The notes beneath the pieces are model-generated. The model had not been told where the DNA came from. It saw only the letters and a program-made list of their open reading frames with translations, and made no database searches. A stretch of 64,000 nt of DNA from Guillardia theta CCMP2712. Its lineage: Eukaryota > Protista > Cryptophyta. Below are positions 16,701-53,853 of this stretch, piece after piece. Both the position numbers and the translations under genes were made by a program. The stretch covers positions 252,093-316,092 of the forward strand of contig NW_005434655.1 in NCBI RefSeq assembly GCF_000315625.1, in the 5' to 3' direction. Within the stretch, counting starts at the first letter, position 1, and every line of letters starts with the position of its first letter.

Positions 16701-18316
16701 TTCAGCAGCAAGGCGAAGGTAGGGAGAGGGGAGGAGGAAGAGGTAGGGGGAGGGCTGACGGACGCGATGGTACAGCCCAAGGCACCACCAGCACCAGCAG
16801 CATCGGCATCGGCAGGGACGCCAGGAGGAGGGACGAGCAAGGCAGAGGCTAAGCCCAAGGGAGGACTCTTCGGGGATGACGACGACGACGACGATCTGTT
16901 CAGCAGCAAGGCGAAGGTAGGGAGGAGGAGAGGAGGAAGAGGAAGGGCAGGAGAGAGTGGGTCTGTACAGGGAGGGCTGACGGACGCGATGGTACAGCCC
17001 AAGGCAGCACCAGCAGCAGCAGCCTCACCGGCAGCAGCATCGGCATCGGCAGGGACGCCAGGAGGAGGGGCAAGCAAGGCAGAGGCTAAGCCCAAGGGCG
17101 GACTCTTCGGGGACAATGCGGAGGAGGATCTGTTCAGCAGCAAGGCGAAGGTAGGGAGGAGGAGAGGAGGAAGAGGTAGGGGGAGGGCTGACGGACGCGA
17201 TGGTACAGCCCAAGGCAGCAGCACCAGCATCGGCATCGGCAGGGACGCCAGGAGGAGGGGCAAGCAAGGCAGAGGCTAAGCCCAAGGGCGGACTCTTCGG
17301 GGACGATGCGGAGGAGGATCTGTTCAGCAGCAAGGCGAAGGTAGGGAGAGGGGAAGGGGAGCAGAAGAGAGATGGAAGGACAAGTCTGTGAGACTAGGAG
17401 GGAGCAGGAGGGAGCGGGAGGAAGGGCAAGAGCAGAGGGCTGTCAGACTGAGAGGGGCGGTTTTAGGCGCAGGCGGCAGCAGCAGTGGAAGGAACGTCAG
17501 GGGGAGTATCAGGAGGGACGAGCAAGGCAGAGGCTAAGCCCAAGGGCGGACTCTTCGGGGATGACGACGACGACGACGATCTGTTCAGCAGCAAGGCGAA
17601 GGTAGGGAGAGGGGAGGAGGAAGAGGAAGGGCAAGAGGGAGTGGGTCTGTACGGGGAGGGCTGACGGACGCGATGGTACAGCCCAAGGCAGCAGCACCAG
17701 CACCAGCACCAGCAGCCTCACCGGCACCAGCACCAGCAGCATCGGCATCGGCAGGGACGCCAGGAGGAGGGACGAGCAAGGCAGAGGCTAAGCCCAAGGG
17801 CGGACTCTTCGGGGACGATGCGGAGGAGGATCTGTTCAGCAGCAAGGCGAAGGTAGGGAGAGGGGAGAAGGAAGCAGGAGGGAGCAGAAGGAAGGGCGAA
17901 AATTTGAAGACTGATTGAGATGTTTGTAGAAAACGACAAGAACAGCAGCACCCCCACCCTCCAAAGACGAAGCCCAGCTCTCCTCGACCTCCAACAGCCG
18001 CAAACTGGCAATGACACTCAACATCAATCCCTCAGCCATGCTGCCTGGGGCCAAGCATCCCAAGAAGAGCGAGGAAGAGAAGAAGGAGGAGAGGAGGGAG
18101 GAAACCAGGGAGGAAAGAAGGGAAGAAAAGCGGGAGGAAAGGAGGGAGGAGAAGAAGGAGGGGGAAACGGCTGGGTCTGTTCTACAGCACGAGACGGCCC
18201 AGAGGCCGAAACTGGCAGGGAGGAGGAGGCCTACGTCGAGACTTCCAGGTGCGAGCTCGGAAGCAGCAGAAACTTCAGGGGTAGAGGCGAAAGCAGAGGG
18301 CGTCGCGCAGGCTCCA

Positions 18317-24006: not shown

Positions 24007-27000
24007 ATGAGCGTCAGTCAGACCGCACCAGTGCGTCAAGGCAGGTTGTTACAGCGAGCTACCTGGCTTCTAGTTCTGGTCCTCCACGCTCTCTCCTTCG
24101 CGTTCTGCCATGGATGCTCCGTCTTGATATCAGCAGAGCCTCACCACGACTGCCAGGAAAGGACGTGGGTGCTAGAGGGAGGAGTGAAGGGTCACTGGAG
24201 CCAGGGGATAGACATCCTCGTCTTCGAGTGCGAAATGGTCAACCTTGTGCTGATGGCGTCAGGTTGTGAGGCAGCAGAGCAGCAGCCGGTCAAAGTGAGG
24301 ATCGACACGGGCGAGCACTTTATCCATAGGGGGAGCTACACCTCCTCCGAGCAGCCCTCTTTCCGCCTCGAGATCCCTGGCGTCTCCGAGTCCGGCATTG
24401 ACGTTCCCCTCCTGCACCTTGCCGATGGCATGTACAACCTGACTGCCCACTTCGGACATCCCCTTCACCTTGCGGCCAGCACCATGTTCGCCAAGCTCTC
24501 TCCCCACGTCAACCCTGCTCTGGAGGTCATGTTCCCTCCCCAACGGTACACTTTCGGCAACGACATGGAGCCTTTCCTGCAGGTCTACGTGCAGGACCGT
24601 GACGCTTCCATAGCAGCATCAGGAACCACAGCAGGAGCATCGAAGCAGCTCGCGTTCTACCTGAACATCACGATCAGGAGGCTCGAGGGAGAAGAGGTGG
24701 TGGAGGAGAAGACGGTCATGGAATGGTCGCCGAATTCACGGAAAATCTTTCTCGGGAGGCACATGGAGGCATCGGGAACTTACAAGATCGAGATGGTGAT
24801 CTATGATGCTGTGCTCCGTCCGACAGATGCTCGAGAAGAAGTCCTTGTCATGATCTCCCACTCATCGCGCTCCCCTCTCGCCTGCATCGCTGGGGAACCA
24901 GAGTGTACCCCTCAGGCGACAGACAGGACGGGAGAGGAATGGTTTCAGGGGGGGAATCATTCTACCTTCCTCGATCGACTGGTTGATGCCGTCCAATCTC
25001 ATTGCCCGCAGATTTCACCGCAGGACAGACATTGTCGGGACAAGGAGCAGGATGCTTGCAGCGGACATGGGTGGTGTTTGGACAGTTTCTGCTACTGCTA
25101 TCAAGACTATGCTGGTCCGAAATGTGATACCCACTTGCTGTCTGCTCTGCAATATTTGCCCTCCTCCTATCCGACGCAGGACGTGTCCCACTGCCATCAA
25201 AGTATTGCTCTGTCGAGGTGAGAGTGGAAGGCAGGACAGCAGGACGAGATCTGAAAGGGAGAAGGGAGGAGGGGGAAGCGGAGGGAGGAAGAGCGCGGGG
25301 AGGAAATTACACCTGACTGATGCATTTCAGGGGGATGGAGGGCCTGTCGCGAACTTATAATGCTCTGCAAAATCCAGCTGTATGTGATGATAGCAAGGTG
25401 AGAAGACTCGTTGCTGCTCTGTCGAAGATGCAATGAATGACATGTAAGCTCTGCCGATTGAGGAACTTTTATGTCTTGATACAAGATGTACCTGTTCGTT
25501 CATGGGGCAAACGATGACTATGTTCAAGTCTATTCAGCGGAGGTTCAACAAGACCCAAGGGCTGGGCGTCACTTTCCGTTGGCTCTCCCTCTCTCTCCTC
25601 TTGTCTCTTGCAGAGCAGAAGGTGAGCAAGATTTCAATGAACTTCACTCCTCCTCTCTCCCCCCTCCTTCAACATGCATGTCGCTCTACTCTTGTTCTTC
25701 CTCTTCGCGCCACTTTCCATCTCTCGCTCCCACTCGTTCACTCGTCGGGATTCAGACGCTGCTGATCGGAGGGAAGTGGCGAGCTTTCAACTTCGAAGGA
25801 TGCAGCGATCGCGGGCTCTGGTGCTACCTCCTGCCCAGCAGCAACTGTAGCGTGAGCAGTTGGCGCTGGGAGGAGATCAGTGAGAAAGATTTCTATATGC
25901 CACAGGTAAAGGAGCAACGACGTGCATGTTCTCCCAGCAGCCCCTGGCGGCTCCCCTGTCCTCTCGTTTCTGCTCCTTTTCCACTTCGCTCCTCCTCCTC
26001 CTCCTCCTCCTCCTCCTCCTCCTCCTCCTCCTCCTCTCTTCTTTCTCTTCTAGTCCCCTCCTCTCCTCTCACCCCTCCTCTTCCCTTTTCCCCCTCCTCT
26101 CTCCTCCTCCTCTCATCACCCCTTCACCTCTCTCGTCGACTGCTGCTATGTACTCCCATAGTCCCATCTTCCGCCCCTGCCATTCTCTTCATCTCCGCCT
26201 CCTCTTGCTCCCTCCTCCTGACTCCTCCCTTCCTTTCAGGTGCTTGTCGTCCCCTCTGAAGGGATCGACCAGGGGCAGCTGTGGTGGAGCTCGCAGATGA
26301 CGCATCTGATCATGAGGCCCTCAGTTGACTTGAAAGAGAAGGTGCGACGGATCAAGGTGAAGGAGGAGGAGGAGGAGGAGGAGGAGGAGGAGGACTGAGG
26401 AGGAGGAGGAGGAGGAAGACTGAGGAGGAGGAGGAGGAGGAGGAGGAGGACTGAGGAGGAGTAGGAGGAGGAGTACCAAGGGTTTGAGTGAGAGAGGAGG
26501 AGGAGGAGGAGGGAGAGGTGGGAGTGGAAGATAAGCAGCAGCAGCAGCAGGTGGTGGTGGTGGGGCTGCTGCTGATGAGAGCGTCTTGTCAGAATTCTCT
26601 CAGCTGGTCTGGTCGAGTCGTGGGGCTTCACGTCCGGCATGGAGACTCTTGTGCTGACATCGCTCGCCGTCGTTGCCTGCCTGCTGGGAAGTACCTGGAG
26701 GTGAGGAGGAGGATGGCAAGGGATGCGAAGAGGAGGCGTGCCAGGAGTGGAAGTGAGTTGAGGATGAGGAAGAGGAGCAGAGGAAGGTCAAGAAGCGGGT
26801 AGAGGAGAGGCGAGGAGAGGCGAGGAGAGCAGAGGTCGGGAAGAGGTGAGGAGAGGCGAGGAAAGGTGGGGAGAGGCGGGAGCGGGAACAAGACAGGAGA
26901 AGAAAAGAAGGGACGTGGAGAGGGTTAGGCAAGGGAGGGAGAGAGGAGGGAAAGACGGATGGATCGGCTCCCTTGTAACATTTGAGGAGGTGGCGGAGGA

Positions 27001-27279
27001 AGTCCTTTCACGCTACCGGATGGACGCGATCTACTTGGCAACTGACGACCCTGTGGTGGTGGAGGAGGCGAAGAAGAGAGGAGTGAGGTAGGACGCATGT
27101 ACTATCTTCCCTTCTTTCTTCCCTTCCTTGGGCGCATTGTGGTCTACCTGCTCCTTGGAGGATGGAGAGTGAGGAGCTGACGGCGAGGCAGGTACATCTC
27201 TGCTCCCATCAAGCGCCACCTTTTCAGCAACCACATGTACATCGAGCATCGGCTCAACTTGGGCGTCGTCGACAGGAAG
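24007..27279 (+). CDS. Secretory EGF-like + GT23 (alpha-1,6-fucosyltransferase/NodZ-like) protein; 3' end lost in the gap at 27571-27670
   Basis: N-terminal hydrophobic anchor or signal peptide; EGF-like CSGHGWCLDSFCYCYQDYAGPKCD; fucosyltransferase motif I GLHVRHGDSC and motif II IYLATDDP; WCYLLPSSNC. Confidence 0.75.
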
Positions 27280-27570
27280 GTTGGGAGGAGGAGGAAGGGG
27301 GAGACGAACGAGAGTTGGAGAAGTTATGAGTGAGAGGCTGGGGAAGAAAGTGGAGAAAGGGGGGATGACAATGGGAGAGAAGTCAAGTGCAGATGGAGGC
27401 AGGGTTGGTAGGAAGGAGGGTCATGGTAGGAGACATTGGGGAAGGGTTGAGGAGAGCGAGGAGGGAGGGAGGAAGGAGGAAGTAGGGAGGGAGGAGGGAG
27501 GAGGGAGGCGGGAGGAGGGGGGGGGGGGAGGTGGTGGGTGGGAGGGCGTCGGTCGTGGAACCCGTCCCGA

Positions 27571-27670
27571 NNNNNNNNNNNNNNNNNNNNNNNNNNNNNN
27601 NNNNNNNNNNNNNNNNNNNNNNNNNNNNNNNNNNNNNNNNNNNNNNNNNNNNNNNNNNNNNNNNNNNNNN
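27571..27670. other. Assembly gap (100 N); others at 19004-19103, 29290-29389, 30672-30771, 42512-42611
   Basis: Runs of exactly 100 n, all flanked by simple repeats or purine/pyrimidine tracts. Confidence 0.99.
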
Positions 27671-27709
27671 GATGATGAGGAGGAGGAGGAGGAGGAGGAG
27701 GAGGAGGAC

Positions 27710-30594
27710 CTGGTTGCAGAGGCAGAGGTCTAGGTCCTTGGGAGAGGAGGCCCAGGAGAGCGTGATGAAGACTTGCTTGGCATCCAGGTCGCTGATCGCC
27801 GCCATGCAGAAACTGGCGCTAGGCTAGAGGGAGGGAACAGGAATGAGATGAAACGAATCAGTGGAAGAGGAGGAGGAGGAGGAGGAGAGGAAGAGGAGGA
27901 AGAAAGAGGAGACGAGGAGGAAGTGACCACGACGACGACGACGAGGAGGAGGAGGAGGAGGAGGAGGAGATCTACCTGGATCTGATTAGAGACGAGGAGG
28001 TCGGAGTAGAGGGCGGGAGAGTGACATTTCTCGTCCTTGACCTCTACCTCGTACTTGCCCCACTCGCAGAAGAATCGATACTCGTTGGGCCGCGTGTACT
28101 CGGGCTGTAAGAAGATGCAGAAGAGGAAGAGAAGGAGGGATGAAGGAGGAGGAGGAGGAGGAGGAGGAGGAGGAGGAGGAGGAGGAGGAGGCAGAGAAAG
28201 AAGAGAAAAGGGAGGTCAGCAGAGCAACCATAGCTCATCTTCACTTACATGGTCAGGCGTGAGGGGGGCAGGGAAGATCCTCAGAGGCACAGTCTCGTCC
28301 ATACTCCTCACGGACACCTGCGAGGACAGCGATGAGAACAAAACCTCCTCTTGTTCCTCTCCTCTCCACTTTCCTCCCTCTCCCTCTCCCTCTCCCTCTC
28401 TCTTAACTCCGCTTGTTCCACCACCAGCACCTCCCCCTCCTCCTCCTCCTCTTGCTCGTCCTCCTCCCTCACTTGAGCCGACGGGGTCAAGTCGGAGTCG
28501 CTCCTCGCCGGGTTGATCTTGACTGTCACCAGCCTCCCTCCCGCCGGGTCCTGTCCTGCCACGTTGTTGATCGTCGACACGCTCCCCTTCCGAAGCTGCA
28601 GACGTCCCAGTAGACCGTCGGGCTCTTGATGTGCGAGCTGGACTTGGAAGGCAGGAAGGATTGTACGACTCCCTCCTTGGAGAAGAGCGTGAGTTGCATG
28701 TTCCAGTGCTCCATGCTCCCTCCCGCCGACACGATCGCCCTGTTGGTTCTCCTGCTCCCGGAATCTGACAGCCAAGGGCAGTCGTCCTCCAGCGGGGCAC
28801 GGAGGAGGCAGCTACGGGGGTTCTTGCCGATCATTCTCATGCTCTTATCCGAGCCAGGGAACGTCTCCGCCTCTTCCACCCGCACGTTCCTCCCTGGCGT
28901 CTCCATGTGCAGGTTGGCGGAGCCGGCGCCCCCCCAGGAGAGGATGAAGCAGAGGTCTGTGTCGCTGCGGAAGAAGTCTGGACGGACGAGCGGAATGGTA
29001 GCGCTGCCCTCCTGCGGGGAGGGTGAGGAGTGAGAGGGGAGGAAGGGAGGAGGAGGAGAGGGTGAAAAATAAGGGACAAGGAACAAGGACGATGATCAGA
29101 AAGAATAGGGAGGAGGGAGTATGGAGGAGGGAGGAGGGAACGAGAGAGGATGCAAGAGAGAGGATGAACGGAGGGAAGAGGGAAGGGGAAGGGGGGATGG
29201 AAAAGGGAGGAGGGAGGAGGGGAGTAGTGGAAGAGGGAGGAGGAAGGAGGGAGGAGGGGAGGTAGTGGAGGAGGGAGGAGGGAGGAGGGNNNNNNNNNNN
29301 NNNNNNNNNNNNNNNNNNNNNNNNNNNNNNNNNNNNNNNNNNNNNNNNNNNNNNNNNNNNNNNNNNNNNNNNNNNNNNNNNNNNNNNNNTGCACCTCTGA
29401 AGCAACAAGAAGCGGAGATGCAAGTGAGAAGTGCTGAGTAGGCAGAGCACAAGCCAAGGTAAAGATGATGCTTCCTTCAACCCGCTCTAGAACTCCTTCT
29501 CGTCCTCCTACTCAAACTTGACCTCGTGATCAAGAAGCTTGTTCACGTCCTCGCAAAGGATACTCTGCAGGGGTAGCAAGAGAGTGAGAGGAGCACAGCA
29601 GCAAGAAAGGAGGAGGAGGAGGAGGAGGAGGAGGAGGAGGAGGAGGAGGAGGAGGAGGAGGAGGAGTAGGAAGAGGAGTAGGAGTAGGAGGAGGAGGAGG
29701 AGGAGGAGGAGGATACCTGGTCGCTGAAGCGACTGTCGCTCTCAATACGTAGATCGCAGACGTGCCAGCAGCAGAGCTTCTCGTCCTTCTCTGCCTTGGC
29801 GACTCGATCGAGGCAGCTTTGGGCGTCAAGCTTGAAGGTTTTCCAGATGCCGTTGAACATGATGATGGTGACGAGAGGGTTGCAGGCGAAGATCTAGGAG
29901 ATAGTCAGGAGAGGAGGAGGGGGGAGGAGGAAGGAGACGGAGAAGGGAGGAGGAGGAGGGGAGGTGAGATGAGAAGGAGAAGGAGAAGATATGCAGCAGC
30001 AGAAGAGCAGGAGAGAAGCAAGAGGAGCAGGGAAGCGGCTGTGGTCGTGGTGTAGGAGGAGAGGGGGGGCAGCAAAGTTGGAGGAGGAGACCTTCTTGTC
30101 GTCTTCGCGGTTCATGACGTAAAGTTTGAACTTGCCCGACATGCTTTGTGTGAGGCTGATGACTTTTGGACCGAAACCTTCATGTACTGCCGTCTCGTAG
30201 CGAATGTTCTTCAGGGAGGGAGCCTGGAGAGAGCGTGAGGGAGAGGGGAGGGGAAGAGCGGAGAGGAAGGGAGAGAGGAGAGGAGGGAAGAAGGGAGGGC
30301 GAGAGAAGGAGGAGACAAAAGAAGTAACAATGTTGGGGTTGAGGAGGAGGCGCCGGGCAGAGTTGAAGAGAAACTCGCGGGAGAGGAAGGCGACAAAGGA
30401 GGAGGAGATAACGGAGTAGAGGAGCAGCCATGAACTAAGAGGATGGGGAGGGGCGTTACCCTGCTCTCGTTCTTGGTTGAGGAAATTATGCCGTCCTGTC
30501 TTGTTGTGAGTGAAAGAGTAGAGGCGGGAGAGGAGGAGGGAGAGGGGGAAGGGGAAGGTTGGCGGCCAGGCGACCGACACGGACGGAAAATGGC

Positions 30595-30671
<77 letters not shown>

Positions 30672-32734
30672 NNNNNNNNNNNNNNNNNNNNNNNNNNNNN
30701 NNNNNNNNNNNNNNNNNNNNNNNNNNNNNNNNNNNNNNNNNNNNNNNNNNNNNNNNNNNNNNNNNNNNNNNCCCTACCTCTCCCTGCGAGTCAGACACCC
30801 CGAAGTCCCCGACTTGCGTGCTCGACTCCGGCTGGACCTGAACCTTGGCACCCGGCACGAGCATGCCGTCAAGGTCGACCACACGGAGGAGGAAGTCGCG
30901 GTAGCCCGGCTCCTCGAGTTTGAGCTCGTTGAAGGAGCGAACGGCGATGGTTCCGCTGGCAGAGACCTCCAGGAAGCAGATATCCCACCAGCTGCCAGCC
31001 TCCTCCTGGAGGAGGGAGGTCAGAGAATGTTCGAGACAGGTAGGAGGGAGGGAGGGGGGTGAGATGAGAAGAAGAGAGAGGCATGAAAGAGCAAGAGGAG
31101 GAGAAGGTGGTGGTGGTGCTGGTGGTGGAAGAGGAGGAGGAGGAGGAGAAGGGAGGTAACGGGGGCCGCACTCGTCCGCAGCAGTTGAAGCTCCGCGCTC
31201 CCTCCCATGCCATGTCCTCTGGTGTGTAGAAGCGAAGCTCTGCGTTGGAGTTGGACCAGCCGATGTCTCTTCCTCCCACTTTGTACGCTTCGCAGTGAGC
31301 GTAGATATGATAGCGCCCGGGGATAAGGCCGGACAGGAGGACCTGATCGACTTGTTAGAGAGGGAGACGTAGAGAAGGGAAAGAGGGAGGAGCGAGAAGA
31401 TGAGGAAAGGAGAGCAGAGGAAAGGAGAGGGGAGGGGGGAGAGATGAGAAGAAAGATTAGATAAAATGAGAGGAGAGGACGAGGACGAGGACGAGGACGA
31501 GGAGAAGAGAGGAGAGGACGAGGGGGAGCGAGGAAGGGCAGCAGGATGCACAGCACATGGGAGGGGGGGGATGGAAGGGAGGAGGGAGGAGGGAGGAGGG
31601 AGGAGGGAGGAGGGAGGAGGGAGGAGGGAGGAGGGCTACCGATATCGGCCCGAATCCTCCTTCAGTCGGGGCGACCTCGAACTTTGCGTTCTCCAGCGTC
31701 TGCTGGCCCATCAGGATATCCTTGGGGATATCTAGGCCCTCCACGCCAGGGGACGGGGACTTGATGTTCCCCTCCGGCGTCTTGACCTTGAGGAATACCT
31801 CGTGCGGGTACTCGGCCCACGTCAGCACGATCCTGACCTGCCCGTCAGGAAGGGGAGGAACGAGCGGCACACAGATGCTCTTGGAAAGATCTCCATGGAC
31901 GTCGAAGGTCGCCGACCCCTGGAGGTCGCCCGAGTCCTCGGAGGAGGCGGGGAGCCTGGCGATGGCGGTGAGGCTCTTCCTGAAGGGCAAGTGCAGCATC
32001 TGCGAACCCCTCCCGTCCGTCCTCGAGTGGCTGTTGGGAGGATGGAACTCTTCCTCCGTCGATTGGTCGTGGACTTCGACCAGGGCTCCAGCACACGGGA
32101 GGCCCTCGGGGACTTTGCGAACCAGCACCTCGAACTGCGTGATCCTCGCTCCGCTCAGCACGCGCACGAGGTAGTCGACGACGTCAGGAGGGTTCGGGAA
32201 CTTGAGTGTGTTAAGCTTCGAGAACAGGACGACGGACTGCCTGCCTCCTCTACCTGACGACCAGTTGCTCGATCCCCAGGACAGTAGGATTTCGAACGAG
32301 CCCAGTCTCGGTCGGCGGAGGGAAGGGTCGAGGGACTGCGGGCCGAGGCACCTCTGGGGATCGTTCTTGCTCACCTTGACGTTCCACATCGCGTCCCCGT
32401 CCGGAGTTTCAGCCAGCTTCGACTCCACCTCCCTCACCAGCGAGTTGTAATTAGTCTCGTAGCGGTTGTACGGGGTACCCTCCTTGTAGGACTCCCTCAG
32501 CGACAGAGACTTGGTTCGATCCGCGATGCAGACCTCGACGTCTATCTCCAGGGGGGTGTCGAACCTGATGCTCCCCATCTCCACCATCTTTTTGAGCTCT
32601 TCGTGTTCTCGCTTCCAATAGTAGCAGAGCTTCCTTCCCGGATGGAGGTCCGGGTTGTCAGCGTGAGCCTTGCCGGGGGACCTCATCCCGAGAGAGTTGG
32701 CCGTGCTGGGCCTGCTCTTGAGAGATTTGTTCAT
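27710..32734 (-). CDS. Large protein: Rdx (SelT/SelW/SelH)-like domain followed by repeated beta-sandwich + YfaP/DUF2135-like modules; 3' end in the gap
   Basis: Rdx-like PRLGSFEI...LFSKLNTLKFP. Repeated modules VRIVLTWAEYP, LCFILSWGG..NLHMETP, VFITLSWASSPKDLDL, GFGP, G-x-Y/F-x-I/L-Y, W-W/Y-D-V/I-C. Carboxypeptidase-regulatory-like LRVVDLDGMLVPGAKVQV. Confidence 0.65.
30596..30671. repeat. (GAT)n microsatellite abutting gap 30672-30771
   Basis: Direct reading. Confidence 0.95.
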
Positions 32735-39396: not shown

Positions 39397-44773
<5,377 letters not shown>

Positions 44774-47369: not shown

Positions 47370-48260
47370 CACAGTCCCGGTCCGCCGGCCGGGCCCCGGC
47401 GGCCGGTGCCTGTACCGTACGGCTCTCACACTCACGGCGGACCGACGGACCGTCCGCCGCGCGCGGCCGGGCCCGGGCCTCACCGTGGCACATGCCGCAC
47501 TGCCCACCGCCACTGTGCCCGGCGGCCGCGCACTGCAGTGCCGCTTCCGCCGGAAGTTCGCCGCGCGGCCGGGCGGCCGCCGGGGCCGCGCCGCGCGGCC
47601 GTGACTGCCGCGGTGGCCACCGTGCCTACCGGCGCAGCCGCGGCCGCCGGGGCCTGGCCGCCAGTCACTGGCACGGTACTCACTGCGGAGGCTACTCACT
47701 GAGTCCGAGTACCGGCGTGACTCTCAAACGCAGGGTCGGACGGTCTAGTCTAGCGCCGCCTCAGCCTGGGTCAGGTGACCCATTTGATCGGATCATCCCG
47801 AGTCCCCAGTCGATTCACTTCAACGCCTCAGTTAATTCTATACGCCGGCCGGGCAGGCTTCTCCCACTACTAGGCTAGGTGACCGTCCCAGCGCGTCTTC
47901 CCCTCGCCATTATTCTTCCGAGTCTGAGTCTCATGTCGCGAAGCCGCGGCGGCGACGGACGGTGTCTTCTCTGCCGATCCTTGTCTTCAGTGTTTTACGG
48001 TTTGAGTTTTGTGCAAACATGCAAAGTTTGCCAAAGTTGCAGTCCCCCGGCCCGATCCCATGATACTTCCTCTGGCCGCCAGTACGGTCACCATCTTCAA
48101 TCAGTACCAAGTTGATTGCAGTGCGAGTGATCCGTCACATGATTCGGGCTCTCCGACCTCTCCTCTGGGCCTCTCCTTATTGTCCTCGTACTGCATTTCA
48201 CTTAACTTTGAGTAAACCCCCGATTCGAGAGTCTCGCTCCGAGGCAGTCACGGTAGTTCA
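47370..48260. promoter_or_regulatory. Large GC-rich intergenic core between the divergent RAP and receptor-CHAT genes
   Basis: Very dense CCGG/GGCC, ACTCACTGAGT, GTACCGTAC. Edge motif at 48171-48216. Confidence 0.5.
48171..48216 (-). repeat. Copy of conserved 46-bp intergenic motif (inverted relative to 53808-53853)
   Basis: Reverse complement TTTACTCAAAGTTAAGTGAAATGCAGTACGAGGACAATAAGGAGAG; 42/46 ungapped identity to 53808-53853. Confidence 0.9.
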
Positions 48261-48338
48261 AGCCTGCCTCAGATGATCAGGTGGGAAGTGGAAAAGATGT
48301 GGCTCCTGATCCAGCTTTGAGGGAGGAACAGCGAAAAC

Positions 48339-51300
48339 ATGTGGGGACTGCGAAGATGTCGTTTGCTCTCTTCGTCTTTAGCTGCATCTATCATGATGAT
48401 CATGATGTCCACGAGCGCTGCTACTGACCTCTGCTTCTCTGGTTTTTACTTCAACGGCACAGGATGCGTGCCCTGTGCTGGGAATCCTGGGAACTCTCGC
48501 TGGGCCTCCAATGGACCGCGATGCGGATGGCTGTGTGATGTGGGATACAGGGAGAGCAACGGAGACTGTGTGCCATGCTCCGGAGAGTGTCGGTCATATG
48601 ACGTCGAGCTGCTGCAGCTTAGCGAACTGAGCGAGGGAGATGCAAGCTTGGAGTTGATGTTTGACTTCTGCTCGGTTGTGTGCCAGAAGTTTGGTCTGTT
48701 CTTCACGGGCATTTTCAGCCCGTCAAATCGAATGTGCATGTGTGCATTCAAGGAAAATCCGCCCGTCATCATCAGCAGCATGACAGCATGCGAAATTCTC
48801 CAGTCTGGCGAGCTTGACGTGCCCATCAAGATGCTTGAGTTTCAATTTCAAAAGTTTTCCTCCCATTCAAAACCTTTTCTTGCCAAGAGCAGCTCGGATT
48901 CTGCTATTTTCTGCTATCAAGCCTCACAAACGACATCAGATATGAGGGTGCTCTGTCTTGTTTATGGGAATGTCACCAGTGCTGTCACATTGATGAGAGA
49001 CGGCAGATTGTCTTCAAATGCAGTTCAATACATGCACGTGAGGAGTACTTTCACACCGTTGTTGCTTCATGGCGATGGCGGGGAAGATAACACATGTAAA
49101 AGCTGCAAGGTCGGGCGCTTTCTAAATTTCAGACCTTTTCCAACCGCAAAGAGCAGCAGCAACACACTCAACGGACCGACAAGGGTTTCTTCGTTTCAGA
49201 TCGAGATTGCTCAGGAACGATCAAAGAAGATGTTTGCGTGCGCGAGATTGGTTAAGTCTTTGGGTTTTCCGTATTTCTGTCTCAAGACAGAGATCGACGA
49301 AGCGTGCTACGCCATCAGTTTCGCAGATGTGTTGAAGGAGGGGAATATGGAATGTTGGTCAGTCCAGATGGCATGTGAGGACTGTTCTGCTCCAGCAGGC
49401 TGGTATGCTTCTGCTCTGAGTCTCAACTTCACATCGCCTGGTCTGCCACTCCTTAATCAAAGCTGCAACGTTGAGTGTCCAACAGATTCTTACACCATCC
49501 GCGGTTTCGAATACATCTCGTACTGGGACAGGCGTGAAGTTACAGTTTGTTATGAAAAGCATGCATGGAATCTCCTGCGCACTGCTTATGTACTTCCAGT
49601 TCCTCTGGGGATGATTATCATTGCTGTAGCAATTCATTTTGAAAGGAAGATGAAGAAATCACAATCTCAATGTGCTGAATGCAGCAGCGAATGGAAAGAC
49701 AACTCCTGCCCCATCGATGGTTTGCCTCTTTCGCAGAAGCTGACACTGGAGGATCTTGGAATCGAGATGGAAGAAAGCTTTGAAGACAATCAAAACATTG
49801 TCAACCTGAGCTGTCAATGCTCGAGGGAGGAAGTTACGTCCATCTTGGTCTGCGGACATGGTTCTTGCAAGTATGAATCGTGTACAAACTGCGGCTGTTG
49901 TTGGGACAAGCAGAAATGGAAGCGCTCTTCTCTGTGGTGGATCCCCCTTGCTATTCTCACCTTCGCATGCTTTGTTTCTTGGAACATTGGTGCTGCTTTC
50001 TACGTCGGAAATTGGCTCAATTGGACGAAATTTTGGTGGATTCTCTTTGCTTCCAGTCACGCCATTATGTTTGTAGTGTATCTTAGAACATGTGCGTACA
50101 AGACAAAGTGCTTGCGCGATGATTGCTGTCCATGCTATTCGCCGGTACCGATGAAAAAAGTTCCCAAGGGATTTCAGTGTGTTTTGATGTTTTTCTTCAC
50201 CACTTTCATTCTACAGTTGTTTTTAACTCTTCTCACACTTAAGGTCGACTGGCAGTTTGCCGAACATTATGGAGGCTGTGAGAGCATCGACTGTTTGATG
50301 TATTCTCGTGTAGACTACAGAGCTTTCTGCCCGCTCTGTAGCGAAGATGAAATACTCTATGCAAAAGTTCCGAGTAACCTCAACAGCAGCTTCATGGTCT
50401 TGGGATTTTTCTTCATGATTGTCAGCTTGATCTGCTGCTTACGGACGCTGCATTTTAGCATAGTTATTGGCATCCGTATTTGCTGCGTGTGTGCAAACAG
50501 CAGGATTCACGAGTTTTCTTATATTTCAGGTTGTTATCAAGATTTCACTTTTGAGACTCTTGGACGAGAATTGTTTCGTTGGCCGAGGAGCTGCAGTAGA
50601 TGCAAGCAGAGACTGTGGAGGAAAGAGAAGCTGTTGGACTCGTTTCTTTATCGCCGGAGGACGAATGTGGTGGTTGCATTGATGAAGCGACTGTCTTTCT
50701 TCGTCACATTCCGGCGATTCTTGGACAACACAAGGCATTTCTACACGTACAAGCCCCTTGGCTCTGCCCAGAACGATCGCTCGGACATTGAGATGGCGGT
50801 AACCACAAGTCAACGTCGACGAAAACCTTCGGCTCCTCTTGTCACAGGATGGAGAGATTTACCTTTCTTGACGTTTCTGAAGACTGAGGGGGCAGGATGT
50901 GCGGAGCTCTTGTACGATGGGAGTCCCCAGCCAAGACTCTTTGCCTTCTCAAAGCTGCCCAAAGGGTTTGTGCTGGAGGAGGTTACAGGCGATCTGAAAT
51001 GGGACCTGCCGGCGGAGGAGAAGGAGGACCATTACCAGTTTGACCTCATCGCATCTAACTTTGTCGGGGAATGCAGGCACGAAGTCCATCTCTTCTTCTC
51101 TGCTGGGCCATGTCCTCCCGCCTCCCTCAGCTACTCTTGCAGTCGCTGCCTGCGCTGTCGGTGCGGCGGCATCTTGACAAGGTATGCCGGCTGGGGCGTC
51201 AAGGTAGTCTGCGACTATTGCGATGCCGTTGGGGAGGCTCATCGACTCGACTGGTTTGTCTGCAGAGCTTCTGGTTGCTCCTTCGATGTCTGCCCGCGTT

Positions 51301-52979
51301 GTGCTGGAAAGAACAGCAGCAGCCCAGATAGGGGAGAGGTCGTCTTCCAGCTGTATCACAATGTCGAGATGTTTGCATGGTGTCCGCTCCCTTCCTTCTT
51401 TCCTGGCTTCCCATCTCCGATCTTCGATGCTGCTGATCTCCCTCCTGGTCTCGTCATCGACGTTGCGACCGGCAAGATCTCAGGCATGCCGTCTGCTTGC
51501 GGCGTGTGGATGGTCACGGTCACGGCAAGCAACTTAGGTGGAGGGTGTCAAACGGTTTTTCTCATAGAGGTGGTAAGCTTCGAGCCGCCCCATGACCTCA
51601 GCTACACGAGCGTCTCGTCAGCCTTCACGGGCAACCAGTTCTCCTACGACGAGAGCAATTTCTTGGCGATTGACGCCTTCCGGTCGCCTGCTTCTAGTGA
51701 GACCTGTCTCATCCCCAGCTGGAGCGGTACCATCACACGCTTCTCCATTCATCCTGCGCTTCCTCCTGGGGTCCACCTGGAAGAGGAGACTGGAGTGATT
51801 TCGGGGGTCGCTAAGAGCGCCATGCAGACAAATTGCTTCACAGTGGTCGGGAGAGGGCCCGGAGGGATGTACTGCTGCGCCCACGTGCGGTTGAAGATCG
51901 CTCGCATCTTGGAGCCCAAGATTCAATACCTGTCTGAAGGCATGCGGAAGATTCCGCTCGGCTCGCACGTGAAGATCGAGCCGGTGAAGTCGCAGACGTC
52001 CATCTCCTGCAGACACATTGACCTGTCCCTCGTTCCTCGCATGTGGACACAGGAGGAGCAAGAGCCGGAGCCAGAGAAGTTCGAGCCACATCTTGTCTGC
52101 ATCAAGACTGACGTGCGTCCTCCTCTCCCCGAGGGACTTTCAGTGGACGAAGACGCGGTGATCTGTGGAACGGCAAGAAGGCCGACTCCAGCGACCACGT
52201 ACTCTATCGTCGTGAGGAACGAGAAGGGGTTGAGCTCCTCCGAAGTCTCCTTCGAGATCTTGAGAGCAGATGGCAAGTCGGCGACGAAGCCAAGGAGCAA
52301 GCTCCTTGCCTTCTTCACGACCCCGCAGGGTTATGAGTCGGTGAATGTGCATGGAGAGGCGCAGGAGATGATGAGGAAGCACATGGACCCTGAGTTTGCC
52401 TTCGACTGCGACGTCAACCCCCAGCCCACCTTCTCGGACTTCAAGAAGTTCCTGACTTCTCATCACGGCTTCAACGTCCGCGTCCTCCACTTTGCCGGGC
52501 ACGGAGAGCAGAACTTCGGCTTTATCTGGAATGAAGACCATCCCAGCATCGCTACTCCGGCTGTTTACGACATGGGCGAGCTTTGCAGCCTTGTGGGAAG
52601 GGTTGCCGTGGGACAGACGCTGACAGGAACGGTGGAGTGTGTTGTGCTCAATGCTTGCCAGACGGAAATGCTGGGGAAGAGAATGCGAAGTGCGGGAGTG
52701 AGAAATGTCGTTTGCTGGAGGACCAAGGTGAAGGACACGACGGCGATGGAGTTCACAGACGCGTTTTACGATTATTTCATGGGCAAGGAGCAGATAGAGG
52801 AGGAGGATTATCAGCATGCTTTCCGGCAGGCAAAGGAGAGAATCCATCCGACAAAGAAGTCAGACAATGCAGGCGCGCTGTCAAGAGCAATACGAAGGAG
52901 ATGTGACTCTCGATCAAGCCTCGACGTCGTTGTTTTCTTGAGTAAGCGAGGAGATGTTTTACCAGAGCAAAGAGAGTAG
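48339..52979 (+). CDS. Intronless multipass receptor-like protein with Cys-rich/WSC-like ectodomain, He_PIG repeats, ZZ-like zinc finger and C-terminal CHAT (caspase-fold) peptidase
   Basis: 1546-aa ORF. Signal peptide; CFSGFYFNGTGCVPC and CDVGYRESNGDCVPC; ~5 hydrophobic helices (49587-50460); LPxGL..D..TG.ISG-type repeats x4; CDYC...C....C.FDVCPRC; KLLAFFTTP...VLHFAGHG...VVLNACQT...FTDAFY. Confidence 0.88.
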   Translation: MWGLRRCRLLSSSLAASIMMIMMSTSAATDLCFSGFYFNGTGCVPCAGNPGNSRWASNGPRCGWLCDVGYRESNGDCVPCSGECRSYDVELLQLSELSEGDASLELMFDFCSVVCQKFGLFFTGIFSPSNRMCMCAFKENPPVIISSMTACEILQSGELDVPIKMLEFQFQKFSSHSKPFLAKSSSDSAIFCYQASQTTSDMRVLCLVYGNVTSAVTLMRDGRLSSNAVQYMHVRSTFTPLLLHGDGGEDNTCKSCKVGRFLNFRPFPTAKSSSNTLNGPTRVSSFQIEIAQERSKKMFACARLVKSLGFPYFCLKTEIDEACYAISFADVLKEGNMECWSVQMACEDCSAPAGWYASALSLNFTSPGLPLLNQSCNVECPTDSYTIRGFEYISYWDRREVTVCYEKHAWNLLRTAYVLPVPLGMIIIAVAIHFERKMKKSQSQCAECSSEWKDNSCPIDGLPLSQKLTLEDLGIEMEESFEDNQNIVNLSCQCSREEVTSILVCGHGSCKYESCTNCGCCWDKQKWKRSSLWWIPLAILTFACFVSWNIGAAFYVGNWLNWTKFWWILFASSHAIMFVVYLRTCAYKTKCLRDDCCPCYSPVPMKKVPKGFQCVLMFFFTTFILQLFLTLLTLKVDWQFAEHYGGCESIDCLMYSRVDYRAFCPLCSEDEILYAKVPSNLNSSFMVLGFFFMIVSLICCLRTLHFSIVIGIRICCVCANSRIHEFSYISGCYQDFTFETLGRELFRWPRSCSRCKQRLWRKEKLLDSFLYRRRTNVVVALMKRLSFFVTFRRFLDNTRHFYTYKPLGSAQNDRSDIEMAVTTSQRRRKPSAPLVTGWRDLPFLTFLKTEGAGCAELLYDGSPQPRLFAFSKLPKGFVLEEVTGDLKWDLPAEEKEDHYQFDLIASNFVGECRHEVHLFFSAGPCPPASLSYSCSRCLRCRCGGILTRYAGWGVKVVCDYCDAVGEAHRLDWFVCRASGCSFDVCPRCAGKNSSSPDRGEVVFQLYHNVEMFAWCPLPSFFPGFPSPIFDAADLPPGLVIDVATGKISGMPSACGVWMVTVTASNLGGGCQTVFLIEVVSFEPPHDLSYTSVSSAFTGNQFSYDESNFLAIDAFRSPASSETCLIPSWSGTITRFSIHPALPPGVHLEEETGVISGVAKSAMQTNCFTVVGRGPGGMYCCAHVRLKIARILEPKIQYLSEGMRKIPLGSHVKIEPVKSQTSISCRHIDLSLVPRMWTQEEQEPEPEKFEPHLVCIKTDVRPPLPEGLSVDEDAVICGTARRPTPATTYSIVVRNEKGLSSSEVSFEILRADGKSATKPRSKLLAFFTTPQGYESVNVHGEAQEMMRKHMDPEFAFDCDVNPQPTFSDFKKFLTSHHGFNVRVLHFAGHGEQNFGFIWNEDHPSIATPAVYDMGELCSLVGRVAVGQTLTGTVECVVLNACQTEMLGKRMRSAGVRNVVCWRTKVKDTTAMEFTDAFYDYFMGKEQIEEEDYQHAFRQAKERIHPTKKSDNAGALSRAIRRRCDSRSSLDVVVFLSKRGDVLPEQRE

Positions 52980-53066
52980 GTGAGATGCTAGCGAGAGAGA
53001 GCTCGTTGCAGAGTTAGAGATAATTAGATGTGTAAGATGTAGCCCGGACAAGCGTCTAACAGATGC

Positions 53067-53779
53067 ATGACACGAGCATCACTGTCCAATCTTATAGAAA
53101 TGTGTGGCCCCACCACCCCACTCCCTTGCACAAACAGATTCGCGCCATTCATGGCTTCTACGCACACGGGAAACGTATCAGCCATTCCATCAATTTCTGA
53201 GGATCAGCTTGCAGCCAAAGCAAGAAGGCATGTAGGAGGATCTAACATCACCAGAATGGATGTTGATGACGAGCAGCAGCAGCAGCAACAGCAACAGCAG
53301 GAAGAGAAGCAGAACGCTATCGAATTATGTTTTCTGTGGATGCCAACGAACAGAATGTGTCAATGGCGATTCGTCAGATGACCGTGATTCTTGTATACAA
53401 CAGGCGAATCTGAAATCCATTCGAATTTCTCTAGAAGCCAAGTGCTTCAAAAATGCATGGGAGCTGTATCACTTTGGCAACCATGCCAAAGGGATACCTG
53501 CTTTAAAGAAACTGCAAGGATCAAAATTTGAGAGACCGAACATCCGGAGAAGTAGGGCTTGTCGAGCGGACAGACATCTTACAGTCAAGTTCGGGGGACA
53601 GCAGTGGGCAGGATAAGACTTGGTTCTCACTGTCTTTTCTCTTCTCGCCGTATGGCCTGTGCGACAGTTTCAGGTTTTTAAGCCTCCTCATGTTGGTGCA
53701 GGATTCAGTGTTGAACGCATTCATTGAAGGAGACGAGTATACCACGAACACACACGAGCATGAAGAAACTCGAAAGTAG
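53067..53779 (+). other. Possible small or decayed coding region
   Basis: Overlapping short ORFs with polyQ and a NAWELYHFGNHAKGIPALKKL segment; no clean gene model. Confidence 0.3.
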
Positions 53780-53807
53780 CGCCGTGATCGGACTGACCGT
53801 GACGGTC

Positions 53808-53853
53808 TTTACTCAAAGTGAAGTTAAAAGCAGTACGAGGACAATCAGGAGAG
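53808..53853 (+). repeat. Copy of conserved 46-bp intergenic motif
   Basis: TTTACTCAAAGTGAAGTTAAAAGCAGTACGAGGACAATCAGGAGAG; a shorter near-identical copy is at 920-952. Confidence 0.9.

Follow-up and report, generated by a model that had tools for sequence, protein, structure and literature searches.

A single-exon gene of Guillardia theta that ends a predicted multipass membrane protein in a compact CHAT protease domain

Introduction

Can one polypeptide chain connect the outside of a eukaryotic cell to a caspase-like protease? A locus in the cryptophyte Guillardia theta raises this question. A sequence-only reading of a 64,000-nucleotide stretch of contig NW_005434655.1 (the window, to which all coordinates below refer; all features described lie on its + strand) proposed that a single open reading frame encodes a receptor-protease, in which a signal peptide and a Cys-rich ectodomain are followed by about five transmembrane (TM) helices and a cytosolic CHAT peptidase domain with an intact catalytic dyad. 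It also suggested that this architecture had no described eukaryotic counterpart. Phytoplankton display caspase-like activities and undergo regulated cell death. The literature that we found on algal cell death concerns metacaspases, and none that we found combines a CHAT domain with either cryptophytes or algal cell death. We asked whether the gene is real, whether its C-terminal domain is a likely protease, and on which side of the membrane that domain would reside.

Results

The open reading frame is a genuine single-exon gene, very probably transcribed

Mechanical listing and translation of open reading frames bore out a 1546-aa frame with an ATG start at 48339..52979, stop codon included. 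The open frame reaches just 6 codons further upstream of this ATG, for a total of 1552 aa. The whole frame is spanned by a single unspliced, transcript-like contig from run X2 (record 2; 48329..53072), which is 4744 nt long, has 0 differences and a depth of 46, and would include a 5' UTR of at least 10 nt and a 3' UTR of about 93 nt. The flanks at 47900-48086 and 53136-53500 had no coverage in this run. Run X2 is only probably RNA, a guess backed solely by its coverage pattern; with that proviso, one contig across the entire frame argues for one transcript rather than two. In run X13, which is confirmed raw-read RNA, we found 1 read in the ~6% of the run examined, and thus no sign of silence. 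Taken together, this is a genuine gene with a single exon, and it is very probably transcribed.

Two trivial explanations were considered and ruled out. The frame is not an artefact of gene fusion or assembly, as an independent metagenome contig and a single contig from run X2 both carry it uninterrupted. Nor is it a prokaryotic contaminant, given that open reading frames are sparse on the contig, giant single-exon paralogs are spread across many contigs, and the homologs are found in cryptophyte transcriptomes.

The metagenome contig carries an allele that is 99% identical, with an intact frame and 16 synonymous and 14 non-synonymous differences. The two alleles have a dN/dS of 0.24 (binomial p 1.6e-4), and they diverge by 4.3% in the 3' flank but by 0.65% in the open reading frame. 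From this comparison, the gene is under purifying selection. Because the frame is open in the second allele and dN/dS is 0.24 with a p of 1.6e-4, the feature goes beyond what would be expected by chance.

The C-terminal domain has a compact CHAT fold with an aligned His/Cys dyad

We next examined the C-terminal region, where Pfam, an AlphaFold2 (AF2) model and a family profile together delimit a compact, caspase-fold CHAT domain at aa ~1320-1540 (52296..52958). The proposed CHAT identity held up: the Pfam CHAT family (PF12770) matches aa 1337-1508 with 44.6 bits, above the cut-off of 24, and a scan of the organism's own genome with a CHAT profile scores the domain at 48.4 bits. Only profile positions 106-272 of 289 are matched, which describes a trimmed CHAT domain without a TPR partner. 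A Pfam search of the whole protein at E<=1 gave no TPR or ARM match; what lies ahead of the CHAT domain is a set of He_PIG Ig domains. The score for Peptidase_C14 (PF00656) was 16 bits, under the 21.4 cut-off, so the protein is not a C14 member, and an NCBIfam scan of the protein returned no family.

The AF2 model of the CHAT domain (pLDDT 86, pTM 0.83) found CHAT and caspase-fold structures in a Foldseek search, as the sequence-only reading had anticipated. The best match was 8TL0, the type III-B CRISPR-associated protease SAVED-CHAT (E 2e-10), to which the model aligned over 187 aa with a Z of 22.1 and an rmsd of 2.5 A in VIA-align; the family profile likewise matched 8tl0_A with an E of 8.6e-21. 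VIA-align gave Z scores of 13-14 against caspase-6/7, legumain, GPI8, MALT1 and gingipain (~13.5 for legumain and gingipain). Profile and predicted structure thus confirm a caspase-hemoglobinase alpha/beta fold for the modelled domain. Like the gene's domain, SAVED-CHAT, the closest solved CHAT domain, is compact and lacks TPRs, although identity in the structural alignment is only ~19%. The match to separase and to Csx29, the TPR-CHAT protein of Craspase, was much weaker (5FC3, 7ZOQ and 8EEY, at E ~5e-4); these share the CHAT/clan CD fold but are large, soluble, TPR/ARM-scaffolded proteins controlled by securin or by Cas7-11/RNA. Caspases and metacaspases (Peptidase_C14) have in common with the domain the caspase-hemoglobinase fold, at the Z of 13-14 seen for the caspases, and the His/Cys order.

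The short motifs reported for this region were all found where they had been placed: KLLAFFTTP at aa 1321-1329, VLHFAGHG with His1388 (codon 52500..52502), and VVLNACQT with Cys1440 (codon 52656..52658). They occur in the canonical order, with H-x-x-G-H-G after beta3 and L-x-A-C after beta4. The dyad also appears to be intact, as His1388 and Cys1440 align with H375 and C422 of SAVED-CHAT, a dyad that was defined by mutation and whose double mutant is inactive. In the alignment, HF-GHG and VVLNAC fall on chain indices 355 and 402 of 8tl0_A, a spacing of 47 that equals that of H375/C422.

Could this domain nevertheless be a non-catalytic scaffold, or a protease that cleaves only itself, once, during maturation, with the function of the protein residing in its membrane or Ig part? 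The trimmed Pfam match would suit such a role. So would the example of DdvA, a transmembrane anti-sigma factor of Myxococcus xanthus with TPR-CHAT organization, which has an 'incomplete' active site and is proposed to convert an outside signal into autoproteolysis. Against this, an alignment of 45 family members shows conservation of at least 90% for His1388, for Cys1440 and for the motifs around them, with E1340, E1433, N1438, W1460 and D1466 near-invariant as well; just 1 of the 14 amino-acid differences separating the two alleles lies in the CHAT region; and the model fits an active-state CHAT structure at the rmsd given above. We consider a scaffold or one-off self-cleaving role unlikely, and a putatively active protease the better reading of the domain.

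The gene is a kinase-less member of a cryptophyte CHAT family

We then asked whether related proteins exist. Searches for the compact CHAT subfamily returned 561 matches at E<=1e-3, 98 of them at E<=1e-10, and the named sources are cryptophytes without exception (Rhodomonas salina, Geminigera cryophila and Baffinella frigidus). Single-protein patterns run on GTDB genomes found no relative. Within the subfamily, CHAT domains are fused to Pkinase, Roc-COR, TIR, SPRY and He_PIG domains, and most relatives longer than 600 aa have no strong TM-like segments (KD >= 1.9).

Two distant paralogs in the G. theta genome, C186 (2177 aa) and C37 (2259 aa), resemble the gene in layout. In all three proteins an ectodomain is followed by several TM helices, He_PIG domains and a C-terminal CHAT domain, and at weak similarity they also share an N-terminal Cys-rich repeat and He_PIG units. 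The CHAT domains of these paralogs, and those of He_PIG-Pkinase-CHAT proteins from other cryptophytes such as KAJ1466575.1 of Baffinella frigidus, are 29-35% identical to that of the gene. The paralogs differ in having an outer C-type lectin domain and a kinase between He_PIG and CHAT, neither of which is present in the gene, and there is no detectable similarity between their TM blocks and that of the gene. Because both paralogs read lectin, multi-TM, He_PIG, kinase, CHAT, we take the gene to be a kinase-less variant; on domain content, it is a kinase-less member of a cryptophyte-expanded family of CHAT-ending signalling proteins.

These relatives bear on the suggestion that the architecture is unique. 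A single chain running from ectodomain through TM segments to a CHAT domain stood up to analysis, but its uniqueness among eukaryotes could not be established in view of the two paralogs and the He_PIG-kinase-CHAT proteins of other cryptophytes. Nor is the architecture without precedent more broadly, as the membrane-anchored CHAT proteins HetF and DdvA exist in bacteria.

The N-terminal part resembles an ectodomain but has few relatives

The N-terminus contains a plausible signal peptide (aa 1-27; 48339..48419), with a basic n-region (RR-x-R), a moderately hydrophobic core (KD 1.36) and the small residues SAA before the predicted cut. The putative ectodomain that follows (aa 28-412; 48420..49574) is rich in Cys (26 in total) and holds 4 N-x-S/T sequons. 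Its first part, aa 23-83, is a Cys-rich repeat common to giant open reading frames of the same genome; these giant Cys-rich frames resemble surface proteins. The remainder, aa 84-412, had neither a family match nor a homolog in Pfam, ESM Atlas or the word-indexed search. Specifically, the ectodomain searched alone in Pfam gave no match even at E<=10, ESM Atlas feature searches with aa 28-412 and aa 405-1000 gave no usable match, and a word-indexed homolog search of aa 28-830 returned the 99% allele and nothing else. A single-sequence AF2 model of aa 1-830 had a pLDDT of 38 and was kept out of the fold search. A WSC or furin-like reading, like that of a zinc finger, is an impression from the Cys spacing, as Pfam searches of sub-regions were empty at E<=10.

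This part of the protein raises the question of whether it senses anything at all. The protein could be a membrane-anchored protease resident in the endomembrane system, with a lumenal or structural N-terminal part and with control exerted in the cytosol, for example by kinases or Ig partners. Such a non-receptor would fit an ectodomain with no recognisable ligand-binding family and relatives that are mostly soluble, cytosolic signalling proteins. We also note that for the ectodomain and TM part alike the near-identical allele is the only homolog, so that conservation lends no support to sensing. However, the distant paralogs of like layout have their C-type lectin domain at the equivalent N-terminal position, as would be expected for outward sensing, and the Cys-rich repeat at the N-terminus recurs in the surface-like frames described above. 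On balance, we regard a protease without a receptor function as quite unlikely, and favor an N-terminal part that faces outward or into the lumen as a candidate sensor.

An Ig-like and Cys-rich module separates the membrane from the protease

About 500 aa, overlooked in the sequence-only reading, separate the last TM helix from the CHAT domain. They comprise four Ig-like domains of the He_PIG type, together with a Cys cluster that resembles a zinc finger. Three He_PIG domains (aa ~1000-1315; 51336..52283) were identified by Pfam PF05345, with 60.9-64 bits over 3 stretches, above the Pfam gathering threshold. The unit nearest the membrane, which brings the count to four (aa 840-922; 50856..51104; motif LPKGF...TG), is assigned solely because BLASTP aligns it with He_PIG regions in the paralogs. 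Between this unit and the other three lies the Cys cluster (aa 923-990; 51105..51308), whose four CxxC/Cx4C pairs have a spacing suggestive of a zinc finger; 12 Cys occur within aa 901-1000. The juxtamembrane region with the first Ig unit, and the Cys cluster, gave no Pfam match even at E<=10 when searched separately.

Five predicted TM helices favor a cytosolic protease

Hydropathy analysis revealed five strong hydrophobic segments, at aa 413-435, 531-553, 566-586, 613-635 and 683-705. TM1 (49575..49643) has a KD peak of 2.12 and is followed by ERKMKK. Loop 1 (aa 436-530; 49644..49928) is probably cytosolic, with basic residues at both of its membrane borders. It contains 11 Cys, spaced CxxC / CxC / CxHxxC / CxxCxCC, that may bind zinc, and when searched alone in Pfam it had no match even at E<=10. 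TM2, TM3 and TM4 (49929..50243) enclose a short outer loop 2 and then a basic inner loop 3 (6 K/R). Loop 3, the region after TM5 and both ends of loop 1 are thus basic, but loop 2 is not, nor is loop 4, which has 3 K/R and 8 D/E. TM5 continues into a hydrophobic, Cys-rich tail that ends at ~aa 720 (50385..50498), and beyond it lies a strongly basic juxtamembrane region at aa 726-835 (50514..50843; 23 K+R and 9 D+E over aa 726-830). It is chiefly this basic region that places the C-terminus in the cytosol by the positive-inside rule. We favor a topology of five TM helices with the N-terminus out and the C-terminus in. The five segments, their odd number and the basic C-terminal flank thus agree with the original proposal of five TM helices and a cytosolic protease, but the topology is an inferred one and aa 683-720 are ambiguous.

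A hairpin is another reading of this 38-residue hydrophobic stretch; it would leave the tail on the outside, and we count it against the favored topology. He_PIG domains in bacteria are typically extracellular. A surface or lumenal protease, produced either by six TM helices (two short ones within aa 683-720) or by an uncleaved N-terminal anchor, and comparable to DdvA, whose TPR-CHAT part is periplasmic, or to the clan-CD proteases legumain and gingipain, which are secreted, is decidedly unlikely: the length of the stretch past TM5, the Pfam description of He_PIG as a mostly cell-surface family, the precedent of DdvA for a CHAT domain that can function outside the cytoplasm, and the fit of the fold to legumain and gingipain would suit it, but it must contend with 23 K+R in the 105 aa following the last TM helix, a single sequon in the 820-aa tail versus 4 in the 385-aa ectodomain, a zinc-finger-like Cys cluster within the tail, TIR- and Roc-COR-fused family members without strong TM-like segments, a helix drawn unbroken at 680-720 in a low-confidence AF2 model (weak evidence), and paralog C37, in which no hydrophobic segment >=1.5 separates He_PIG from the kinase, so that these domains should lie on the ATP-containing side, and in which the CHAT domain follows the kinase with no peak >=1.6 (the listing threshold) past residue 1119.

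Discussion

Altogether, we consider it fairly probable that the gene encodes a multipass membrane protein with its ectodomain out, five TM helices and a cytosolic Ig-CHAT tail, acting as a latent signalling protease. After cleavage of the signal peptide, the Cys-rich, glycosylatable ectodomain would face the outside or a lumen. The cytosolic tail of ~820 aa would consist of the basic juxtamembrane stretch, four He_PIG domains with the inserted Cys cluster, and the C-terminal compact CHAT domain (clan CD), kept latent at the membrane. Clustering or a conformational change, transmitted via the ectodomain or the Ig array, could then activate the protease to cut its own chain or cytosolic substrates, as a step in stress, immunity or cell-death signalling. 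Caspases are activated by oligomerisation. The clustering step proposed here is modelled on SAVED-CHAT, which is switched on by oligomerisation into filaments; a complex prediction with two copies of the gene's CHAT domain scored 0.00, which speaks neither for nor against self-association. Receptor function, protease activity and the link to immunity or cell death are putative, and represent the most likely mechanism by analogy with known systems. A scan of the organism's own genome for gasdermin (PF04598) had no match, but the control was also silent, making this result uninformative.

How does this arrangement compare with known CHAT proteins? SAVED-CHAT is a soluble bacterial protein whose SAVED domain senses cA3, whereas the gene's CHAT domain ends a eukaryotic membrane protein with Ig domains. 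HetF of Anabaena likewise unites a CHAT protease with a transmembrane and an extracytoplasmic domain in one chain, and its protease activity requires a conserved Cys. It is, however, bacterial, with a TPR periplasmic part and no Ig array, and the likeness drawn here is one of domain description. DdvA is also membrane-anchored, but has the opposite orientation (CHAT periplasmic), a single TM helix and a TPR scaffold, and its output, unlike that of the gene, is a cytoplasmic zinc-binding anti-sigma domain. By analogy, HetF and DdvA are functional precedents for membrane CHAT proteins.

A bolder proposal, which we regard as doubtful, is that the gene and its lectin-kinase-CHAT paralogs form an undescribed class of cryptophyte cell-surface immune or death receptors, in which an outside cue causes clustering, activation of the CHAT protease and effector cleavage. 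Cues envisaged for such receptors are a virus, a bacterium, a grazer or a self signal. If this were true, the gene would represent a one-protein pathway from sensor to caspase, and would directly link the CHAT defence proteases of prokaryotes to regulated cell death in eukaryotic phytoplankton.

What the analysis means for cryptophytes is that one of them possesses a compact CHAT protease family whose fold is nearest to that of a bacterial CRISPR-associated defence protease. Members of this family are joined to kinases, to Roc-COR and TIR domains and to membrane modules that resemble receptors, all of them kinds of parts that immune signalling in animals, plants and bacteria employs. The kinase-less member described here is its simplest version, leading from ectodomain through the membrane to the protease, a design that could convert an outside signal into protein cutting. 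Its simplicity would make it a convenient entry to the roles of CHAT proteins in algal immunity and cell death, and to how a membrane may control a caspase-fold enzyme.

A single-exon gene with one probable transcript

The CHAT gene lies at window positions 48339-52979 on the plus strand (the window being C19:252093-316092 in a genome of 87.1 Mb and 669 contigs). The single 1546-aa frame that the sequence-only reading had placed here is present in the mechanical ORF list, where it starts with ATG, and its translation is intact; upstream of the ATG the open frame continues for only six codons. No other ORF in the window comes near this length, and ORFs are otherwise sparse there, as expected of a eukaryotic genome. 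The three motifs reported for the translation, KLLAFFTTP (aa 1321-1329), VLHFAGHG (with His1388) and VVLNACQT (with Cys1440), were all found, and the nucleotide positions assigned to the His and Cys codons were exact. The ESM Atlas collection already has an identical entry, a predicted protein for which it gives no model.

The sequence-only reading had named two separate transcripts as an outcome that would refute the single chain. Sequencing run X2, which carries the tool label "RNA?", gave a single 4744-nt contig on 48329-53072, with 0 differences and a depth of 46, and zero coverage in the intergenic bins 47900-48086 and 53136-53500. A single contig over the ORF with uncovered flanks argues against two transcripts. 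An unspliced mRNA would give such coverage, its 5' UTR measuring at least 10 nt and its 3' UTR about 93 nt, with the nature of X2 as RNA being taken from this pattern rather than from the run record. Run X3 covered 30 of 30 bins, flanks included, as expected of a DNA run. Pieces of the ORF were found at low depth in run X8 (also "RNA?"), and 1 read came from X13, the sole confirmed raw-read RNA run, of which about 6% was read. One probable transcript covers the entire ORF.

An allele of the gene, 99% identical and with zero indels, is present on a metagenome contig (ENA ERZ930071, locus L011). The two alleles differ at 30 of 4581 nt, 16 of the differences being synonymous and 14 non-synonymous, and at 14 of 326 positions in the 3' flank. 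Because dN/dS between them is 0.24 (Nei-Gojobori; p = 1.6e-4 in a binomial test against neutrality), and given the divergence of the flank, we conclude that the gene is under purifying selection.

Several other features were observed in the window. A dispersed motif of about 38 nt, with the core CTTAACTTTGAGTAAA preceded by TCGTACTG, occurs in 3 copies against 0 expected: at 48186-48217 (plus strand), some 120 nt before the ATG of the CHAT gene, and at 919-955 and 53807-53845 (both minus strand). Its 21-23-nt core occurs three times in an X2 contig of depth 113, two of these on the same strand 90 nt apart, and several X3 contigs stop at 48193-48216. One possibility for this motif is an element linked to a promoter or TSS, another a small mobile repeat. 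A 585-aa ORF at 40172-41929 (plus strand), with tandem KDEDTFPV repeats at its start and a matching repeat ORF on the opposite strand, suggests either a repeat protein of low complexity or a tandem repeat that is non-coding. At about 42250-43670 the assembly has a gap (a run of N, X in translations), and long codon repeats for poly-Leu, poly-Ser and poly-Gln, a CAG/CTG-type microsatellite, flank it. Strong GC skew (to +0.36) and AT skew (to +0.47) relative to the rest of the window mark 16001-18000 and 26001-32000; repeats with a strand bias could account for this, or else a long gene with a bias.

The C-terminal domain is a compact CHAT domain

The C-terminal domain had been called a caspase-like CHAT peptidase with an intact dyad, and profile, structure and active-site alignment bear out the CHAT fold and the dyad. 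It matches Pfam CHAT at 44.6 bits (cut-off 24), while Peptidase_C14 reaches 16 bits, below its cut-off of 21.4. A HMMER search with aa 1290-1546 against 1.84 billion representatives returned 561 proteins at E<=1e-3, of which 98 reached E<=1e-10; identity is 35-42% for the best relatives. In an alignment of 45 of these relatives, conservation is complete or at least 90% at His1388 and Cys1440, in the G-H-G and L-N-A-C that flank them, and at E1340, E1433, W1460 and D1466. When the domain was modelled by AF2 with this alignment (pLDDT 86, pTM 0.83), Foldseek ranked five chains of 8TL0 first (E 2e-10), a structure of the SAVED-CHAT filament in its activated state, with caspase-9/3, separase and Csx29 behind them. 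VIA-align against 8tl0_A gave Z 22.1 (rmsd 2.5 A, 187 aligned residues), above a plateau at Z 13-14 of caspase-6/7/8, legumain, GPI8, MALT1, gingipain and clostripain.

The family profile aligns to 8tl0_A at E 8.6e-21, placing HF-GHG on ILHFIGHG and VVLNAC on VVLNAC (indices 355 and 402), and the 47-residue spacing of His and Cys in this alignment is that of H375 and C422. According to the SAVED-CHAT paper, these two residues are the catalytic dyad, lie about 4 A apart, and yield an inactive protein when both are mutated. The domain is therefore a genuine compact, TPR-less CHAT with the dyad intact.

Membrane topology and the remaining domains

By hydropathy, the CHAT protein is a membrane protein, with five strong hydrophobic segments: TM1 (aa 413-435, KD 2.12), TM2 (531-553), TM3 (566-586), TM4 (613-635) and TM5 (683-705), the last with a Cys-rich hydrophobic tail as far as about aa 720. 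This agrees with the five or so helices of the sequence-only reading; the signal peptide proposed with them stays putative, the N-terminus having a fitting basic n-region, moderately hydrophobic core and SAA site. In an AF2 model of aa 1-830 (pLDDT 38), helices span 409-438, 534-555, 561-593 and 610-644, with one unbroken helix at 680-720; these low-confidence boundaries weakly favour five helices rather than six.

The charge distribution fits an N-out/C-in orientation: the borders of loop 1 are basic (ERKMKK and DKQKWKR), loop 3 has 6 K/R in 26 aa and the 105 aa following TM5 have 23 K/R, as against 1 K/R in loop 2 and 3 K/R versus 8 D/E in loop 4. Sequons occur in the ectodomain (N39, N211, N363, N373) and in loops 2 (N561) and 4 (N682), and the predicted cytosolic segments have only N489 and N992. 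We infer that the CHAT domain quite probably faces the cytosol.

The ectodomain contains 26 Cys. A Cys-rich repeat shared with giant ORFs of 2200-3070 aa in the same genome makes up its first ~60 residues, and the rest of it gave no detectable relatives in Pfam, ESM Atlas or homolog searches. Between TM5 and CHAT, Pfam identifies three Ig-like He_PIG units (aa 1000-1315, 60.9-64 bits); a fourth He_PIG-like unit, Ig1, at aa 840-922 is recognized by BLASTP to He_PIG regions of paralogs and by an LPxG...TG motif. A Cys cluster (aa 923-990) separates Ig1 from Ig2, with 12 Cys in aa 901-1000, and loop 1 has 11 Cys. Since no Pfam model matches either segment, their resemblance to zinc fingers is one of spacing alone.

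Relatives in cryptophytes and in the same genome

The close relatives with a named source all come from cryptophytes (Rhodomonas salina and Geminigera cryophila from EukProt/MMETSP; Baffinella frigidus, NCBI KAJ1466575.1), and the remainder are metagenome proteins. Compact CHAT is found at or near the protein end in He_PIG-Pkinase-CHAT, Pkinase-CHAT, Roc/COR(-SPRY)-CHAT, Roc-COR-TIR-CHAT and TIR-CHAT arrangements. The G. theta genome has at least 17 matches to the subfamily profile, as well as three classical full-length CHAT genes (contigs C21, C8 and C79). Because five of the compact-CHAT matches share the minus strand of a 41-kb stretch (G000:C118:127199-168022), they look like a tandem CHAT gene cluster.

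The full architecture of the CHAT gene is single-copy in this genome. Two distant paralogs, each a giant single-exon ORF, are found at G000:C186:44000-53500 (L024, 2177 aa) and G000:C37:52000-61500 (L025, 2259 aa). In both, a Cys-rich N-terminus is followed by a C-type lectin, several hydrophobic segments, He_PIG, a protein kinase and a C-terminal CHAT with intact dyad; they are receptor-kinase-protease fusions, the lectin-kinase-CHAT combination being confirmed by Pfam. The C37 protein has no hydrophobic segment >=1.5 between He_PIG and kinase; its CHAT comes after the kinase, and past residue 1119 no peak reaches the listing threshold of 1.6. On this evidence the Ig units, the kinase and the CHAT domain of that family share the compartment that contains ATP, which bears on the topology of the CHAT gene product.

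Discussion

Membrane-anchored CHAT proteins are known from bacteria. In HetF, a CHAT domain is joined to a TM domain and to TPRs in the periplasm, and DdvA combines a TPR-CHAT in the periplasm with one TM and an anti-sigma domain in the cytoplasm. With these precedents, a membrane CHAT protein made of one chain is not a new idea. Full-text literature searches (of incomplete coverage) found no account of CHAT proteins of this kind in algae, whether in eukaryotic transmembrane, cryptophyte/haptophyte/dinoflagellate, or algal cell-death and metacaspase contexts. We rate the CHAT gene as a known protease domain in a receptor-like eukaryotic architecture without earlier description, and the cryptophyte expansion to which it belongs as likewise undescribed.

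The domain is predicted, with a modest lean in favor, to be catalytically competent. Speculatively, the acidic residues conserved close to the strands of the active site could provide an S1 pocket that accepts basic residues. As a tentative proposal, possible but on the unlikely side, the protease would be kept latent until clustering or a conformational change, passed on from either the ectodomain or the array of Ig units, triggers it, and would then cleave in cis or in trans. This is drawn by analogy with caspase induced proximity, with the filament-dependent activation of SAVED-CHAT, and with DdvA, a membrane protein for which signal-induced autoproteolysis has been proposed. The CHAT gene belongs to a signalling-type family, and is best seen as a kinase-less, lectin-less member of a receptor-like group with the C186 and C37 paralogs.
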